From Zygnema circumcarinatum SAG 698-1b (Eukaryota; Plantae; Zygnematophyceae): 64,000 nucleotides of DNA. Every line of letters starts with the position of its first letter. Positions within the stretch are counted from its first letter, which is position 1. The stretch is from contig CM074806.1 in assembly GCA_037447605.1 (NCBI GenBank), forward strand, positions 2,356,001 through 2,420,000, given 5' to 3'. The notes under the pieces are model-generated. The model worked only from the letters and a program-made list of their open reading frames with translations, ran no database searches and was not told the origin of the DNA. Below are positions 21,076-49,013 of this stretch, piece after piece. Made by a program: the position numbers and the translations under genes.

Positions 21076-24000
21076 TCAAGAGCGGTCAGAGCTCTCCTCA
21101 CTGTCCACGGCCAATCGCGCTCTTTCAAAAGGACTACTCCTTGGCGAGAATGAGTACTGCTGGACCTTCATCAAGTCAGCATTCAATGCAGCTAGCTCAC
21201 GGTCAAGCGTCCTCCGAACATCGCTTCTGTTCTGCTTCCCAAAGAGAGCATTCCACACCAGTTCCTCGCCCGACCGCTTTCCTGACTTTCCCGGTTTTTC
21301 TGTGTCCCTGCCTAGTCCCTCGCTGAAAATAGCAGTTTGCTCAACAGACGCATCCGGGGCAGGCACCTGCATTGCAAATTAAATAGTTCACAAGGAATAC
21401 ATAAATAACGAACTAGCCGATTGCAAGAAATAGTCAATCACGGGTAAGTATGCCTATCATTCAGAGGGAGAGCCATCTGTGCATGCATCTTATGAGCGGC
21501 CACGAAACTGAATCGGCATTCACAGCCAGTGACCATTTGTTTCTCCATGAAGATAACAAGGCAATCAAACGTCTTTCCAACCACTCAGTATGAAGACAAA
21601 GTCAGCCATCCAATTAAAGAGATGTTGCATGGAGCTTGGAAACAACCAACTTGACAGCATGATGCAGCATGCTGCAACCAACAACGACGAGTCCTATATG
21701 TAGCTACTTTGCAGTGGACATTCATTTTGATAAAAAGTTCAAGTGCTCTGTGAAAGGGAAGAACGAAATGGACTTAAATAGATGTGTTGAATTTGACTAA
21801 GATCGGTTTGAGTGGAAGAATGACCTAATAGACATCAGTCCCAACAAGGGGGAAAGGAGCCACTATGAGCCGGTAAGGCATTTTACAAAACCTTTAACGT
21901 GACAGCCATACCTTGCTGATATCCGGAGTGCTTGAAAACAGTCCCAAAACAATGACAGGCCCAGCGATGGCAAGGCCAATGGAAACCAAGACTGCTCGCT
22001 GAAGGAGAACTTTCTGTTGTTCAAAATTGATTTTTTCAGATGTCATGGCATCCACATGTGCCTGGCTATCTTTCAAAAAGGCCAATTCTTCATGAAGTTG
22101 TTGTTCTCTCCTCTGCAAAGTGTCCCAGGTGAATCACAAACTCCTTCAGTTTATCATAAGCCAAGTGACAGGTGACTGGAAACTGCTGCTTAAAGCATCG
22201 ACTGCACTATGGATTTGCTACAATTTAGAATTGCCTGATTCAACAATGTTGAGAGAAACGAAATGAAAAACATGACAACAGTTGGTTGCAGACACGTGAA
22301 TGCCGGAAGCGCAAAGAGAATGCCCATTTCCCGTCTGAGTTTCATCAAGTGAAAGGTCCACACCTCTGCCTCTTGTTCAGAAGCGATGCGCAAGCGCTCC
22401 AACTCCTCTGCCAAGTGTGCGACATATTGTCTCGCTCCGTGAAGCTCATCCGCCAAGTCTTCTCCCCGTGAAGTTGCTGCAGACAACTCCGCTGCAACTT
22501 CTGCAAGCTCCGTCTGATAATAGGCGGTTGCTGTCACAAATTCCTGTCTATGCTGTTCTGTAGCTTCTGCCAGCTCCAATAAGTGTTCTGTAGCCGCTCT
22601 ATCCGCTTCTTCCCTGCACAAACATAACATTTTCTTACTCGTCCATACAGGCAGGACATCACATCCCATCTGCATTGATAGTCATATCGGTCAAGCGGAA
22701 AAGCATACGGATGGCGTGCTTTGACAGGATAACGAGGTAACTGCCGCCCTTTGGAACTCAAGCTTTCACAGCCTCGCGAAGTCAACACTATTTGATTGCA
22801 CGTAAAATGGACAGGTCATGTATTCAGAATGAGAGTAGAAGTGGTGAAGTGGTTCCATTGAATGCAACAGCTGACGAAGTCGTTCATGCTCATGAAGTTC
22901 GGAAAATTTGGCCTTTATCTTTATTGCAAATCCACTGCAACATAAGAAATAGAACACTCTCACTGCACTAAAGATGAGAGCTCATAACAGCTCTCCGTGG
23001 GGAATCGCATTTCCTCTACGCCAAGATGGCACAAAAAAACGAGGATTTACGACCCTTCTAAGACATACACTACTTGGCTTGGTGCTGTCGCCACAGCAAG
23101 CATTAAGTGAATGCCCTCAGCGTAGACAAACCATACAAGACATTAGCCTTCAAGAAGCCAGTAGTCCTGCTTCAGGGACAATGGATGAGTGTTCTGCACA
23201 GGCAAGAAGAAGACAAACACTCACCTCCTTTCAGAACGTGCCAATATCCTGTTTGTTGCTAATTGTTGCAGCGACTTGGTCAAGTGAGGCTGACTGCTTT
23301 CTACGCAGAAACTCAGCTGCTTGAATTAGTTAGGCATATTGCAACTAGCCATTTCTCCTTACGGAAGTGATGGAGACAATGAGGACCCGAGGGCCCGAAT
23401 CAGATGCTGTTGCAAAGGCTTTCCCTGTCAAATTATTGGCGATTTTTTCTAAACACGGGCACTTAATGAAAGCTCACACAAACACTGAAAATATAATGCT
23501 TTCGTCAAACTGGCAGGCAAACCGGCGTGTCAATTCTATGTTCAATGCCATTCAAGAGATGGTACCTGGTCCTAAGTGTTCTCTCCTTTCAATGTTTTAT
23601 CGTGTTCAATAACAGTCTAACATCTCCAATCTAACGGTGTCAAACAACAGAGTACGCTCGCCGTTTTCCATGGCAAAACCAGACTATGCTCTTCATTTGG
23701 AGAGTAGCTAGGAAAAGAGATTGCATCGGACTACCTGCACTGACCCACAAATCCGCATTTGCTAGTCCTGATTAAAACATGAGACATTTGCCACGTTTCT
23801 CAAAATTTTGAGAGAGTGCTCTACGCGCCGTTAGGCAACTCTGAAGTGGATACTTTCAGAACTACAATTTGCACAGTTCGAATTTCAAACCCGATAAGGA
23901 AAAAATCGTATCGTGAAATACAGGAACAGCTAACAAAACATGCTCCCACATTCTCGAACCAATCAAAACGAGCCTGCAGTGAAAGCAGGAGACATAGCGA

Positions 24001-27000
24001 AACTAACATTCATTGGTCCTCTCAAAACTCTCAAAAACTACTACATTGTCAATGCTAATCTAGGATCACCGCACTTGGATGCCCTTGGCGTATGTCCCTA
24101 CAAAGGTACACAGTCGTACTTCGATTCCACGCCGCTACATGAACTCCGTTAAAAGTGAAGTGGATTGCAGGAAAAGGCGCTAAAACATGAGGAATGCGAA
24201 CAATAAGGTTCTCCAGGCACAAGAGATACTCGAGGTTGAGACTCAAGGTCAGACCTTGTACAGTAACCATTAATAAATATGAACAGGAATAAGGCAAAGG
24301 GTCTCAGTGCGAAGACCTTACCTCAAATTGGTTAGAGTTGTTTGAAACGACACTTTCTCCTCTTCCAATCCCCCAATCTTCTCAGCGGCGGACACCAGCT
24401 GCAATCTCATGTTCATCAATTCCTTCTCCAGCTCCGGTATCCGGCTGCTTGAAGCAGGTGATTCACCATTCTTCAAGTGCTCTAACTCCTTCGTCAAAAG
24501 CACCACCTGCTCTTGTGCAAGTGCACGTGCTCCTTCAGACTCCAGGGTCGCCTCTTTCTGTGCAATAACCTTCTGAACAAGGTCATCGACAGTGCTTCGC
24601 AGGGCAAGTACTGATTCTTGCGCAGAAGAATTCTCGCTCCTTGCAGCTGCCTCCCGCTTCCTTGATTCAGTGACCTCCTTCAACACTTCTTCAAGGCGGA
24701 CCTTGGCTTCCTCCGAAGCCGCTTCTGCAAGTACAGAGCTTTGCTGTTCCCTGATCGCAAGTTCGGAGAGCTTTTCTGTTAACTTGGCAAAGGTACCACT
24801 TAGAGCTGCTGCCGCTTCACTAGCATTCACATCACGCAACTGCAAAAATTTTATCCTCTCCGATAAGGTTGCAATTTCTTTCTCAGCTGTGCTTGCCTTT
24901 TCAATTGCAAGGGCTGCCCTTGCCTCAGCATTCTCCAGCTTTTCCTTGTATGCTGAAACGGCTTCTTGTTGAGAATTCTCTGCAGCTGCCTTCGCAGCCA
25001 ACAGGCCAGAAACTCTCCGTGACAGCTCTTTGTTATCATTTGTTAGCTCTATTAAGCTACCCTTAACCATTTCTGTGTCACTCATCAACTCTTTTATCCT
25101 AGCTGAGAGCAAAAGAACTTGCTGCTTAGCGATAGCCGCTTCTTCCTTCGCATGAGCTGCTTCTTTGGCTTTCCCGGCAGCAAGCATCTGTACAAGAGTA
25201 GAAAATAGATAGTTCAGCAGAGGAGCTCGTTCAAGAGTAAAATTGCAGCAAAAAAAGTATGCACCCACAGCAAGAGCATTTGACACCTGAATTCCGATAC
25301 ATCCCAGTGTTAGTAAAACGAAAGCGCTCATCTCCAATTGGTCTCTGCTGCAAGACGATTTTAGATTATTTATGTCTAATGAATAAACTGTCGGGTAAAG
25401 CTGCTTACCTTGACTCGCTCCATCTCGTTTGCTGTAGCCTTTCGTGCCTTCAGATAAGAAACCTGCGGACATACAGTACGTGCATGTTGTGAAATGAACG
25501 ACCGCACTCGTGGCCGACATGAACAACACAAGAAAAATTACAGAAAAAAACTGTAACTGAAAGGTCCACGTTTCACAGCTGACAACCAATCGAAGATGTT
25601 GAGAAGAAACGTCAGGTACCTGAGATAATTTATCAGTAAGCTGAAGGTGGGAAGATACTCCTTGCTGGAAATGTTCAGAAATGAGTAGTCTTTGCGCGGT
25701 CTGCAAACGGGAAAGCACAACGCACAGTGATAATCAGAGCTACCATATTCAAGCATATGGGGCAAACGCTTCAAGCACTTCATTCAAGCTGTTACAGAGA
25801 TTAAAATTAGCTGTATGTCAACTGAAATAACACTTAAATCCTTCACAATTGCTTCATTCCATAAACAGTAAATACGAGTACTCTCAAGCTCACAACTACT
25901 GCAAACTCATATGCACCGCCGACAAGAAAGCTCGTCTGGCGTGCCAATAAACTCACAAGCCAGTCCTCTGCTGAAGAACCAGTGACCCCCCGGAACTCTC
26001 TTCCTCTGCAGAGGTCTTGGGCCAACGTTGCCAATCTTGTGGACTCACCGGCCAAAAGTTTGTTCTTTGTCTGCATGCAGGAAAGGCACAAAACTACATA
26101 ATAAGCAACAGATGCATACATCCAATTTTGGCACTGTAAAAAGCAAGTTCTAAAGGTCCAGATGACCAGAAAGTTTCTCACCTTTGAGCGTAGCTACATA
26201 TATTACAATTACACTTCATCTTTGGTATGGACCTACTCAAGATTAGTGAATTGCAGTACAAACCATGATGGTCACCTCGAGCAATTACCAGCAACAAGTA
26301 GAAACGATCGCACTTTTAAGAGATTTGAACCATCTTACTTCTTCCCAAGCAGCCATATTTGGAGTAGCTGAAGGGCACACATCGTGAATCTGCTGCATTG
26401 CCTTCCTAAGCTCCATCGCCTTTGCGAAGGTCAAATAGCTGCGACACAAACAAGACATAGGTCAGGTTGACAAAAGAATTTGCAAACGTAACAGACGAAG
26501 ACAATTATGAATTAAGCACAAGCCAGCTTCCCAAGGAAAGCAGACCCATAACTCTTCTTTTTATTAATGTGATAAAAGTTTGGCATTTCAACAAGCGTGC
26601 TAATTGGGATATTGCCTTAAAGCAACAAGGGAGTCCCGCTGAAGACCAGAGGCATCGCTAAGGTAGACTTTGTGGCCACTCGCTGTCAACGACGCCACAG
26701 TCCGAACAGCCTCAGGAAGAGCTAAGGCCTGCCAAAACGAACATGAGAGCACTTCAGTTGATGCAAGCTCCTGCTACTAAATATAGAGATGGAGGGAGAG
26801 ATTGATGTGTCCTGAGCACCAGTAATCATATCAAATGAAGTCAAACCCGTAAATCTGAACAAGTGACCTTAGCCGAACACAGGGTGAATGGAGTGCCTTG
26901 AAATCTAGATGCACCCTTCATTGAACAAAGTTTCAAACTAAAATAAAAAGAGAAGAAATCTTGCTTATATTGTATGTAACTGCTTTTCAGATTCAGTTAG

Positions 27001-28319
27001 ACACGAGGAATCGTCCCACCTCTACTATCCATTCCTCACATGCTTTTGTTGTTCAGATTTTAATAATACAGTGTTCTGGAAAAAATAGACTATACCTGGT
27101 CATGATAGAAGTGTTCATCCATGGAGATCTTTGCCGCAACCATTTCGAGTGCTGTTGCTGTTTGGACGATGGCTGGCCAATCAATCCCCAGTCTCTCGTG
27201 TTCGTCATCAATCTGCAGCCAGATGTTACAAAAGGACAGACATAAGACTATGACCAATATTTGTTTTACGTCGGCAGATTGAACAATTTACAAAGTTTGA
27301 AAAAGGCCCTTTCAATACTCTGAACGGTAAAGTACCGTGCAAAAGCTTAACATGGGAGCAGAAGCATAATGCCAGGAATCACAAAGCATTTGGTTGCTGT
27401 AGCCACATCTCACTACTGTCTCACCATCATGCTGATGACAGCCCTCGCTCCACTGTCTCTGATTGTGTGAACATCTTCGGAACACTGGGGCCCGTCACCA
27501 AGAATAAGGTCGGGAGACACCTCACTCCAGTTCAGTTTCCGTTTTTCCTGTTGCACTGCGTCATTCAATGCATGCGAGCAAAACGAAGCGAAAAGCTTCG
27601 AAATCAGCTGCTTCTAACTCTCAAAGGCCAGTTGCGAAAGGTCACAACTGTCATCAGTCAACTGTCAAGGTTGTCATCTATTTACATCACACTCGGATTG
27701 TTAGCATATGTAACAAAGCTGCCTAGGCTGATTATTTTTGGAGAGTCAGGGAAAGCTGCTTAGGCTGATTATTTTTGGAGAGTCCGGGCAAGCCAACTCA
27801 TTCATTGTAATGCAAATAGGGAAACAGGTTAAAAAGTAAGAAACGATCAAGTGCCGAGAGAGACATACCCCCAAGGCCCGTCTTAACAGGAACTTCCATA
27901 TCGACTTTCATTCGCAGCTGCTCAATCTCCGTAAAGACAGCTGGCTTTTCCATTCGAGCCACTGCTGGCTGCTTCTCCATTTGGGCCACAGCTTTCCCGC
28001 TAGCAGTTGCAGCTGTTGCCCTACCATTGGTCGATTTATACATCGTTCGGCGTCTGGAGGGATAGCTCCTTTGCATCCGGCTGCTGCTGCCCCTTTCTGC
28101 TCTAGTGTCTACAGGATCCGTCTCAGCACTAGCAGTGCCAGCGTCGCAGACAACAGCTGCTCTGCTGTTTTTCTGAACACGTCCATATCCAAATCCAACA
28201 GAGAACAAGCGTTTACCAGAGCCATTCCTCACCCGAATCTCTCTGGCATGCTTACAAGCACCAAAATGCAGCCCACTTGCAGCAGAGCTCTCAAGCAGCG
28301 CAAGTGCGCTTGACGCCAT
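21076..28319 (-). CDS. Putative plastid protein: degenerate glucan-phosphatase-like DSP domain + long coiled coil + C-terminal transmembrane segment
   Basis: Exons (minus) ~28319-27869, 27555-27425, 27212-27096, 26728-26616, 26438-26339, 26070-25957, 25700-25620, ~25462-25409, 25187-24322, possible small exon ~23300, 22613-22364, 22112-21912, 21366-21076. Ser/Ala/Arg-rich N-terminus. LNWSEVSPDLILGDGPQCSEDVHTIRDSGARAVISMM...GIDWPAI...LPEAV...KVYLSDASGLQR...ALSYL resembles the SEX4/LSF DSP fold. E/K/A/L heptad-rich middle; hydrophobic AVLVSIGLAIAGPVIVLGLF. Confidence 0.75.
27717..27795 (+). repeat. ~37-bp tandem duplication in intron 1 of the DSP-like gene
   Basis: AGCTGC(C/T)TAGGCTGATTATTTTTGGAGAGTC(A/C)GGG repeated twice. 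Confidence 0.85.
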
Positions 28320-46425: not shown

Positions 46426-49013
46426 CTAGTCGCAGATGAAAGGAGCATTTACGTTTTTGTCACTGCAATAGAGCCCCGGGTTCTGCTCAAAACCTTGCTT
46501 CTTCAGCAGCGCCCGGACATCCATAACAAGCTCACGGTTTGTGAGTTTCCCCCTCTTGGCCGCCACCGCCGTTTGAATTGCATTGCTCAGAGCACCAAAG
46601 GCCTTTGTAGACCCATTGGCCCGCACATCTGCTGACTTCTCCTTTGCCTGACATCCACTCACGAGAATGCCCATATCCACAGAAACTCTGCGTCCGGGTG
46701 GTGGCTTCCATCCTGCTAGCACTGGACCATCGTCATCTGCCTGTGCCGCCTGTTGTGCAAGAGGCGTCATGTGGGCAAGTGCATCCGTAATTTTTGGTCC
46801 TCCCGGCCGACCTTCCATCTGAGACTTCACAAACTCCAGAGTAACGGTGGAAAGAATCCCAGCAAGCTCTCTATTTCCATTCCCAGAAAGCTGCGACATG
46901 ATAGCTGGCCCGTGCTTGATCAGAACGCCCACAAACATCTGCACCATAGGGCTGGCATCTTTTCCAAAGGCAGAATAGAGAGTTGTGCGTATGGCCCCTT
47001 CTGTAACTTTTGTCCCTGTCTTCTGGCCTAGCATGGACATGTAGGAGGTCATAGAAAGACCCCTATTTTTGAAACACGGAGCACGTGAACCTCCACCGCT
47101 GACATGCCCACTTGAATAGCCTCCACTGTGAATGCTCTCATGCTTTTCTTCATATTCACTCTCATGCGAACGACGATTTCCCTCCACTGACACCCCCCCT
47201 ATTCCGCCAGAGCGTGGATCTTCTCTGCGGTCGTCTTCATTTCTGCTCCCGTAGCCACGTCCGTACTCAGTCGGTGGGTGATATTCCCTGCTGGTATTAC
47301 CGCGTGCCCGGTTTTGAGCTGCATAGCCCGAGAGGTGAAACTCGCGGGAGCTAATTCCAGGGGCAACTCCCCTGCTACCAGTGGTCGAGTTGCCGATCTG
47401 TTCCTTTTCATGATCGATGAGGCCACCACTGTGACAGCAGTCACAAATTAACGTGAATGTGACTCCAGCAGGTAGAGTGTTCACAATTTCTCGAAAATCG
47501 TCATCTGCAGCCACAAACACAATACAGTCAAGATGCGTCAACTCAACACATGCAGCAAACTGTTTTCCTATCAACTCATGACGTAGAAACTTCCGACGTT
47601 GCCAGTTGAATAACAATCAACATTACTTTGCATCCAAACTTTGGTTTAAAAAAAAAAAAAAAAAAAGTGCGAGCTATATAGCCAGCTCATAAGGAACGTC
47701 TCACAAGAGACAGAATACATATGCAAGAATGACAGCAATCGTACACACAGATTAGCAAAAACGTCGTCATATCCTTTTTGCACCTGCAAATGTCTTCCTA
47801 TTGGATCCTGCTGCTCAGTCATCACTCAGCTCTTTTCAAAACACTGATATCCAAGTAAACTGATAACAAAGGGAATGACCTAGACTACACAACTAAACCT
47901 ATTTAATCTCCAACACCTTTTTTAAGAAATTGAGAGCTCTAGTATAGACCTTCTACAAGTCTTTACGATGGAAAGCAGGAACGAAAATGAGAAACATCGA
48001 GAAAACGTTGTTTACGCTAAGCCACACGAGAATTTGGAACAAAAAACTTGCAGGAAAGTGGAAGTAAATCCAAAGTAAGCCAGAAGCCAAAGGCAGAATA
48101 CAATGGACAAAGTCGCAAGCCACTTAGAATTACAAGAGAATCTCGCATATCCATACCTGTCAGAAGGTTCATGTCCGTCGGAACAATGCACTCATCCATT
48201 CCTGTGTCATCGGGGATGCCACTCTCGGGTGGAATCTGCGTTCCATGGCCGCTGAAATGCATGACCAGCACATCGCCTGCCTCAGTGTTTGCAACGATTT
48301 TGCTTAAAGCTTTCCGGATGTTCGCCCCTGTTGGCTGGGGATAGTTCTTATCAGTGTCAATCATCAACACAATATCCTGTGATACAGACAAAAAAAGATA
48401 ATTTTGCCATCAGTTAAATAGTCAAAAAACGCAGGGAAGCAATCAGAAAGGCGATTGATCACATGCACATTGGACACAAGCTCGCAAACCGAGATGAGTT
48501 TCTGGTTTCAGGAGAGGCATTCTCACGGCCGCATACCTTGCAACTGGAACTTCGGTAGGTATCAGATGAAACGTAAATAAGATAGCCATAGAGATGGAAA
48601 TGACCCACACCTTCCCAGACTAAATGGCAGTCTTTTCTGTCCCAAGAAAGTCACATTGCAGCAGTACTAGATTCGCTATGATAACACTAACGAATGAATA
48701 TCAAACAAGCAGAGCCACAAGGAAAAAAATCCTACTCATTCACATCGTTTCCAGCGACACTTCTACAGAGGAAGAGCATCCTTACGAGCCTAATCCAGCC
48801 ACAGCTCATTGCACGAGCCATTCCTTCTTCTAAACCGGTAAACTACGCACACTTGTCAACGCAGCACACCGAGAGATCAAGTCTCACCTCCTTGTGGAAG
48901 CCATAATATTTGAGAAGCATCTCCTTCATGCGCAGAACGTCATTGACGCATCCCTGCAGCTCATTATCCGTATTGGGATAGTTGCAGCCCACGACGAGCG
49001 CCCTCTTCGACAT
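46426..49013 (-). CDS. Type II metacaspase
   Basis: Exons 49013-48888, 48376-48157, 47504-46426. No prodomain (MSKRALVVGCNYP), catalytic HFSGHGT and DCCHSGG, DDTGMDECIVPTD, long linker, p10 ILVSGCQAKEKSAD...QNPGLYCSD...FIC. Confidence 0.96.

Follow-up and report, generated by a model that had tools for sequence, protein, structure and literature searches.

What might a domain that resembles a starch phosphatase do once it has lost its active site and sits on a long coiled coil with a membrane helix? The question is raised by a minus-strand gene at positions 21076-28319 of a 64,000-nucleotide stretch of the genome of the alga Zygnema circumcarinatum SAG 698-1b (assembly GCA_037447605.1, contig CM074806.1, positions 2,356,001 to 2,420,000 of the forward strand; hereafter, the window). 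A sequence-only reading of this locus proposed that four small exons encode a non-catalytic dual-specificity phosphatase (DSP) domain akin to SEX4, LSF1, LSF2, and laforin, joined to a long coiled coil and a hydrophobic helix, with a glucan-binding or scaffolding role.

The gene is real, and its transcripts are spliced. Its product appears to combine a dead DSP head, drawn from an uncharacterized branch of the glucan-phosphatase clan, with a rod of about 420 residues and a single hydrophobic helix. We tentatively favor the view, with a probability of roughly 0.4, that the protein is a membrane-anchored pseudoenzyme scaffold of the plastid, which docks proteins rather than glucan.

Gene structure and splicing

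Four public runs, each from a different study, supplied contigs that were aligned to positions 21950-27949 of the window. These contigs contain 10 of the 11 predicted splice joints: every joint from E1/E2 to E9/E10 in each of the four runs, and E10/E11 in one (X2). The E11/E12 joint is predicted from splice signals and reading frame. Single contigs of about 2.2 kb cover E1-E9 in three runs, and a contig from X1 carries 612 nucleotides ahead of E2, comprising E1 and about 160 nucleotides of 5′ untranslated region. Although the runs bear no RNA label, canonical introns are cut out exactly in all four studies, which indicates that the runs hold spliced transcripts. The gene's sequence words are absent from three 2017 runs carrying the same species label, under which more than one strain may therefore be filed. 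The density of introns and the gene content are in keeping with a eukaryote of the green lineage.

The four small exons of the sequence-only reading, E2-E5, proved exact in their coordinates and in frame. Their boundaries are AG/GT, with a GC donor for E4, and the relevant joints are found in the contigs of all four studies: 27555/27869; 27212/27425; 26728/27096; 26438/26616 (the GC donor); and 26070/26339. Intron 4 (26615-26439), which directly follows the degenerate P-loop exon, is thus of the GC-AG type and is spliced in four of four runs. Intron 1 contains a 37-nucleotide tandem duplication, 95% identical (27715-27788). About 600 nucleotides upstream of the start codon, the segment 28920-29220 carries short palindromic units at 42-nucleotide spacing together with many inverted repeats.

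Joined in phase, the 12 exons total 2,769 nucleotides, stop included, and encode 922 residues without an internal stop:

E1, 27869..28319, minus strand, residues 1-150: start codon in good context, transit-peptide-like N-terminus, and low-complexity linker; donor joint in four runs
E2, 27425..27555, minus strand, residues 151-194: DSP N-terminal strands; ExR where the family has WxW
E3, 27096..27212, minus strand, residues 195-233: GID helix and D-loop; RDFD changed to DEHF, and the Y/W pair to Arg201/Leu202
E4, 26616..26728, minus strand, residues 234-271: GC donor; P-loop HCTAGxxR changed to SDASGLQR
E5, 26339..26438, minus strand, residues 271-304: final helices of the DSP core
E6, 25957..26070, minus strand, residues 305-342: putative first helix of a DUF2934-like tail; Leu309, Ala321, and Asp340-Trp341 in register; modest scores
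E7, 25620..25700, minus strand, residues 343-369: putative second tail helix, a weak match
E8, 25409..25462, minus strand, residues 370-387: probable start of the coiled coil; joints in contigs
E9, 24322..25187, minus strand, residues 388-676: main coiled coil, three long helices
E10, 22364..22613, minus strand, residues 676-759: acidic coiled coil
E11, 21912..22112, minus strand, residues 760-826: rod end and the sole hydrophobic helix; acceptor joint in X2, donor predicted
E12, 21076..21366, minus strand, residues 827-922 and stop: hydrophilic tail past the membrane helix; predicted from splice signals and frame

Identity of the DSP head

Profile, structure, and database comparisons of the protein were all made exon by exon. 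The subfamily profiles come from 120 glucan-phosphatase-like loci found through a metagenome motif scan. Against the best of these profiles, E4, E2, E5, and E3 rank first to fourth among the 2,123 stop-free six-frame stretches of the window; moreover, E2-E5 tile it in order, at positions 5-42, 45-76, 86-119, and 121-152. E3, E4, and E5 fit the family profile gap-free in a fixed register, and the fixed-register score of each of the four exons is reached by none of 20,000 shuffles. The four also give colinear matches to SEX4, LSF2, and laforin-like profiles. The DSP resemblance noticed earlier therefore stands far above chance, and the head is, as judged by its sequence, a DSP domain of glucan-phosphatase type.

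Searches with single exons yielded little. Pfam gave no significant match to ten exon translations or to E7, the exons being too short; PDB sequence searches with E3-E5 returned chance matches only; and in the same database E2 found SEX4 alone (E 0.22). Atlas features of E2 indicate families of the protein tyrosine phosphatase (PTP) fold.

Which branch of the clan is nearest? Summed over E2-E5, the bacterial family of about 205 residues scores 71 bits, against 34 for SEX4 and 32 for LSF2, a comparison in which the deeper bacterial profile may add some bits. A smaller version of the subfamily profile comparison agrees, and pairwise scores take the same order (mean 194 for the bacterial family versus 143 for a set dominated by SEX4 and LSF2). 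E2 alone slightly favors SEX4. By these scores, the nearest kin is an uncharacterized bacterial and algal DSP subfamily with a DUF2934-like tail, and the protein is not an ortholog of SEX4 or LSF2; the most likely source of its head is an algal member of that subfamily. The kinship originally proposed holds for fold clan and type; as closest relatives, SEX4, LSF2, and laforin give way to this separate subfamily.

Traces of the tail may persist in E6 and E7, which carry its invariant Leu, Ala, Trp, and Ala at the expected positions. The scores are modest, being reached by 70 and 17 (E6) and 324 (E7) of 20,000 shuffles, and free profile searches with E6 and E7 against the DUF2934-like tail were not significant.

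The bacterial and algal subfamily

Members of the subfamily consist of a DSPc domain and a weak DUF2934-like tail, and come from Desulfobacterales, Gammaproteobacteria, Competibacteraceae, Defluviicoccus, and others. An AlphaFold model of the bacterial subfamily (predicted local distance difference test score, pLDDT, 96.6) finds its best structural matches in LSF2, SEX4, and laforin, with PTPMT1 behind. Compared with a mostly chlorophyte, 331-residue cluster of the ESM Atlas, it gives a template-modeling (TM) score of 0.92 over all 204 residues.

P0124, the sole eukaryotic member retrieved, has an intact P-loop (HCTAGINRA) and a transit-peptide-like extension. It aligns in order with E2-E5 and has motifs around the P-loop in common with them. 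In a quick tree of reference sequences only, which leaves out the Zygnema protein, P0124 groups on a long branch with the bacterial family and apart from SEX4 and LSF2 (Shimodaira-Hasegawa-like approximate likelihood-ratio test, SH-aLRT, 98). A long-query alignment aimed at long fusions was dominated by SEX4 and LSF2, with P0124 as its one algal-type member. Since eukaryotic members exist, direct recent transfer from bacteria was not adopted as an explanation.

What the Zygnema protein has in common with the subfamily (the bacterial alignments A1/A2, P0124/P0243, and the chlorophyte cluster) is the profile register, the P-loop-region motifs (for P0124), and perhaps the traces of a two-helix tail. 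The members themselves are about 200-400 residues long, with HCTAGxxR, RDFD, and WxW intact, whereas the Zygnema protein is about 620 residues longer and predicted to be dead. Bacterial members are too short for a long rod. Downstream of P0243, the DNA encodes a WD40-like fragment and no rod, so this locus is uninformative on whether active members carry a coiled coil. The assemblies at L201 and L202 (P0124 and P0243) differ at the 3′ end; L202 runs into the WD40-like fragment, possibly through an assembly join.

Sequence and model features make the bacterial DSPc plus DUF2934-like family a candidate prokaryotic glucan phosphatase. A 2026 review reports that no such phosphatase is known from prokaryotes, that bacteria lack laforin, and that no glucan phosphorylation machinery is known from them (PMC13666283). 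Scans of viral contigs gave no match.

Other features of the bacterial members were recorded. The full catalytic motif is present (L121-L200, A1/A2), with the D-loop Phe at 100%, the aromatics of the Y/W pair at 81% and 90%, and an N-terminal WxW. Competibacteraceae or Defluviicoccus, which are glycogen accumulators, contribute 16 of the 80 bacterial genome loci. At six alphaproteobacterial loci (L172, L173, L178, L182, L184, and L188), a glgC-like gene with ADP-glucose pyrophosphorylase domains lies in the fetched flank of the DSP gene. The neighborhood is otherwise unconserved, so this neighbor may reflect shared ancestry only.

Loss of catalytic and glucan-channel residues

The family has 48 positions conserved at 90% or more, of which the Zygnema protein keeps 25 and changes 23; the P-loop columns of this count are inflated, because part of the family set was selected by its P-loop motif. 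Kept positions look mainly structural, and the catalytic and substrate-face positions are among those lost. In the P-loop, SDASGLQR, Ser257 stands for His and Asp258 for Cys; Thr and Ala are changed too, and Arg264 is kept. In the D-loop, the general-acid Asp has become Glu227, and Phe has become His228. The HCX5R motif is thus absent, and the family's invariant Gln and N-terminal WxW are also changed. With Cys, His, and the general-acid Asp all replaced, the domain is predicted to be catalytically dead, as the sequence-only reading supposed. The residue pattern fits a domain that abandoned its substrate face and whose fold selection then continued to maintain.

Can such a head still hold glucan? 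LSF2 contacts glucan through Tyr83, Tyr85, Tyr135, Trp136, and Phe162 (PMC5779698). These positions were checked on fetched LSF2 proteins, and none of the five has an identical counterpart in the Zygnema protein: the channel sites hold Arg201, Leu202, and His228, and upstream of the E2 motif there is no aromatic residue in either register. P0124 likewise lacks the Y/W pair, yet retains WxW and Phe, so loss of the pair by itself is not decisive. As the earlier reading had it for CBM48, neither the ten exon translations scanned nor E7 gave a Pfam match to CBM48 or CBM20, the two carbohydrate-binding modules considered; a domain split across small exons could escape, but E8-E11 are coiled coil.

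One alternative, then, is that the dead head itself binds starch or phosphoglucan, and that the rod ties granules to the membrane. The domain descends from the glucan-phosphatase clan, it keeps Arg264, and Phe229, Tyr230, and His231 adjoin the D-loop, where they could stack sugars. Surface glucan-binding sites, furthermore, have no strict signature (PMC5779698). We nonetheless consider this alternative unlikely, given the empty aromatic channel, the absence of a carbohydrate-binding module match, and the negative charge that Asp258 would place in the phosphate cradle. Of the two roles first proposed, glucan binding is the one weakened, and scaffolding is the one we carry forward.

Rod, membrane helix, and tail

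E1 is rich in Ser, Ala, and Arg, with three acidic residues within the first 60, a composition that fits a plastid transit peptide. Downstream of the head, E9 and E10 show a 3.5-residue hydrophobic period and heptad scores that exceed every shuffle, and the model of E9 contains three long helices. The rod runs from about residue 372 to 795. A single hydrophobic helix follows at residues 800-818 (about 21936-21992), its 19 residues averaging 2.54 in hydropathy, and past it lie about 100 hydrophilic residues. Both the long coiled coil and the hydrophobic helix of the sequence-only reading are borne out by these measures.

From this layout we infer a location, a topology, likely partners, and a possible link to starch. 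The gene for a plastid DSP of the uncharacterized subfamily would have gained the coiled coil and membrane helix and lost its active site. Its product would be imported into the plastid and anchored through the C-terminal helix in the thylakoid or inner-envelope membrane, and the rod, up to about 60 nm long if extended, would hold the dead head out in the stroma. The head, its fold retained, would most likely dock proteins, for example an active paralog or starch enzymes, as LSF1 recruits beta-amylases; it probably would not bind glucan via the canonical channel.

The same layout would suit a structural protein of plastid membranes that has nothing to do with starch, acting in envelope or thylakoid shaping, division, or positioning, with the dead DSP as an oligomerization or lipid-binding cap. 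All glucan-specific features are lost and the fold is kept; the large N-terminal part, the late helix, and the 100-residue tail resemble inner-envelope proteins; and, after the glucan phosphatases, the family's nearest structural neighbor is the lipid phosphatase PTPMT1. This, too, is improbable: no positive link to such a system was found, and the domain's ancestry lies in the glucan-phosphatase clan.

Alternative processing of intron 9

Intron 9 (22614-24321; 1,708 nucleotides) is the longest of the gene and has four outcomes: splicing at the main joint; use of an acceptor farther upstream, at 23193; inclusion of a cassette exon; and retention. Two of these define further exon forms:

Longer E10 form, 22364..23193, minus strand: upstream acceptor within intron 9, stop after seven codons; joint in four of four runs
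Minor cassette exon, 23225..23734, minus strand: within intron 9, immediate stop; one run (X3)

All three alternative products terminate no more than seven codons past E9, ahead of the membrane anchor. Contig depth, a poor measure, is 40-136 for the upstream acceptor versus 130-468 for the main joint. The alternative products would be either a soluble, anchor-less isoform or targets of nonsense-mediated decay; intron 9 processing would thereby remove the anchor or dispose of the transcript.

Elsewhere in the window, an open reading frame at 46426-47616 (minus strand) has a caspase-family domain (Peptidase_C14) and is probably a metacaspase exon.

Comparison with known systems

SEX4 (DSP4), LSF2, and laforin belong to the same fold clan as the Zygnema head. 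Unlike them, the Zygnema protein lacks the catalytic Cys, His, and Asp as well as the aromatic channel, and it gave no CBM48 or CBM20 match. SEX4 and LSF2, moreover, occupy a different branch of the reference tree from the bacterial and algal subfamily.

LSF1 contains PDZ-like and CBM48 domains, and is not known to have a membrane anchor or a long rod. Neither of its two domains is matched in the Zygnema exons. The likeness lies in its standing as a non-catalytic scaffold (PMC13666283), the role proposed for the Zygnema protein. LSF1 is set apart here by its described domain make-up.

MFP1 is not known to have a DSP domain, and its anchor lies near the N-terminus. With PTST2 and MRC/PII1, it offers the likeness of a long coiled coil on a plastid membrane, with a proposed role in choosing the starting points of starch. 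Bound to the thylakoid, this coiled-coil protein determines the sites of starch initiation (PMC13167743). An E9 search for homology among proteins of 256-815 residues found no relative; coiled coils diverge fast.

Chlorella PMTT combines a membrane anchor and coiled coils with a Cys-less rhodanese (10.64898/2026.07.17.739135), an enzyme domain that is likewise without its Cys and is of a different fold. Chlamydomonas SAGA1 and SAGA2 resemble the Zygnema protein in that a head related to starch is combined with a long coiled coil. Repeated Rubisco-binding motifs are a feature of both PMTT and the SAGA proteins, and the SAGAs also have a CBM20; neither was found in the Zygnema protein.

Through its parallel with PMTT, the architecture could also serve as a pyrenoid tether, tying the Rubisco matrix to thylakoid tubules in the manner of PMTT or the SAGA proteins. 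We give this little credence. The Chlamydomonas-type Rubisco-binding motif, W[RK]xx-hydrophobic-[DE], and internal repeats occur in no exon, although lineage-specific motifs could be missed, and the pattern scanned was that of Chlamydomonas rather than that of Chlorella.

In the literature searched, which left most subscription journals outside its coverage, no protein with a DSP domain, a coiled coil, and a membrane helix is described; the sequence-only reading had not recognized the combination from land plants either. The gene thus apparently encodes an undescribed variant of the pseudoenzyme scaffold, real and expressed, for which the function is a proposal.

Weighing the scaffold proposal

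The reading of the protein as a scaffold rests on the spliced contigs from four studies; the gap-free register of E3-E5; the 25 of 48 positions kept; a family model like LSF2, SEX4, and laforin; the grouping of P0124 with the bacterial family; the match to the chlorophyte cluster; and the precedents of LSF1, MFP1, and PMTT.

Several points weigh against it. No orthologs were found, in searches made with single short exons and under length limits, and the architecture is known in one genome. (E9 found no match among the proteins of 256-815 residues, its own protein included, which suggests that the database searched holds none of this organism's proteins; E2, compared with 1.84 billion representatives, gave two matches, both repeat-driven artifacts.) The glucan substrate of even the active subfamily members is presumed, and unproven. 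Finally, a tail of about 100 residues past the helix fits the inner envelope at least as well as the thylakoid, and does not require involvement in starch.

Might the gene instead be a decaying, non-functional fusion? The lack of orthologs and the substantial share of truncated intron 9 products would agree with decay, but a frame of 922 codons stays open over 12 exons, splicing is efficient in four studies, and fold residues are selectively kept, without gaps across E3-E5; decay is very unlikely. An active enzyme of changed chemistry, with Asp258 as nucleophile, is scarcely credible: Arg264 is kept and the acidic Glu227 holds the general-acid position, but PTP-fold catalysis requires a Cys thiolate, and the P-loop has lost its His, Cys, Thr, and Ala; the D-loop and the invariant Gln differ as well.

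Significance

The finding is one odd gene in one genome, and a starch-organizing role for its product is a guess, given the loss of the residues that usually grip starch. How starch is placed around pyrenoids in the algal relatives of land plants is undescribed in the literature searched, and the structural proteins of pyrenoids vary from lineage to lineage (Chlorella preprint, 10.64898/2026.07.17.739135). For such placement, the gene supplies a concrete candidate: a rod that is expressed, bears a membrane anchor, and carries a dead head resembling a starch enzyme.

A bolder and doubtful extension is that streptophyte algae use a small family of membrane-anchored, dead glucan-phosphatase-like rods, the Zygnema gene included, to hold starch plates or starch enzymes in place around the pyrenoid, at the membranes of the plastid. 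Such rods would replace SAGA or MFP1, and intron 9 splicing would switch the Zygnema protein between anchored and soluble forms. The work also indicates an uncharacterized LSF2-like subfamily in bacteria, where the 2026 review reports no laforin (PMC13666283).

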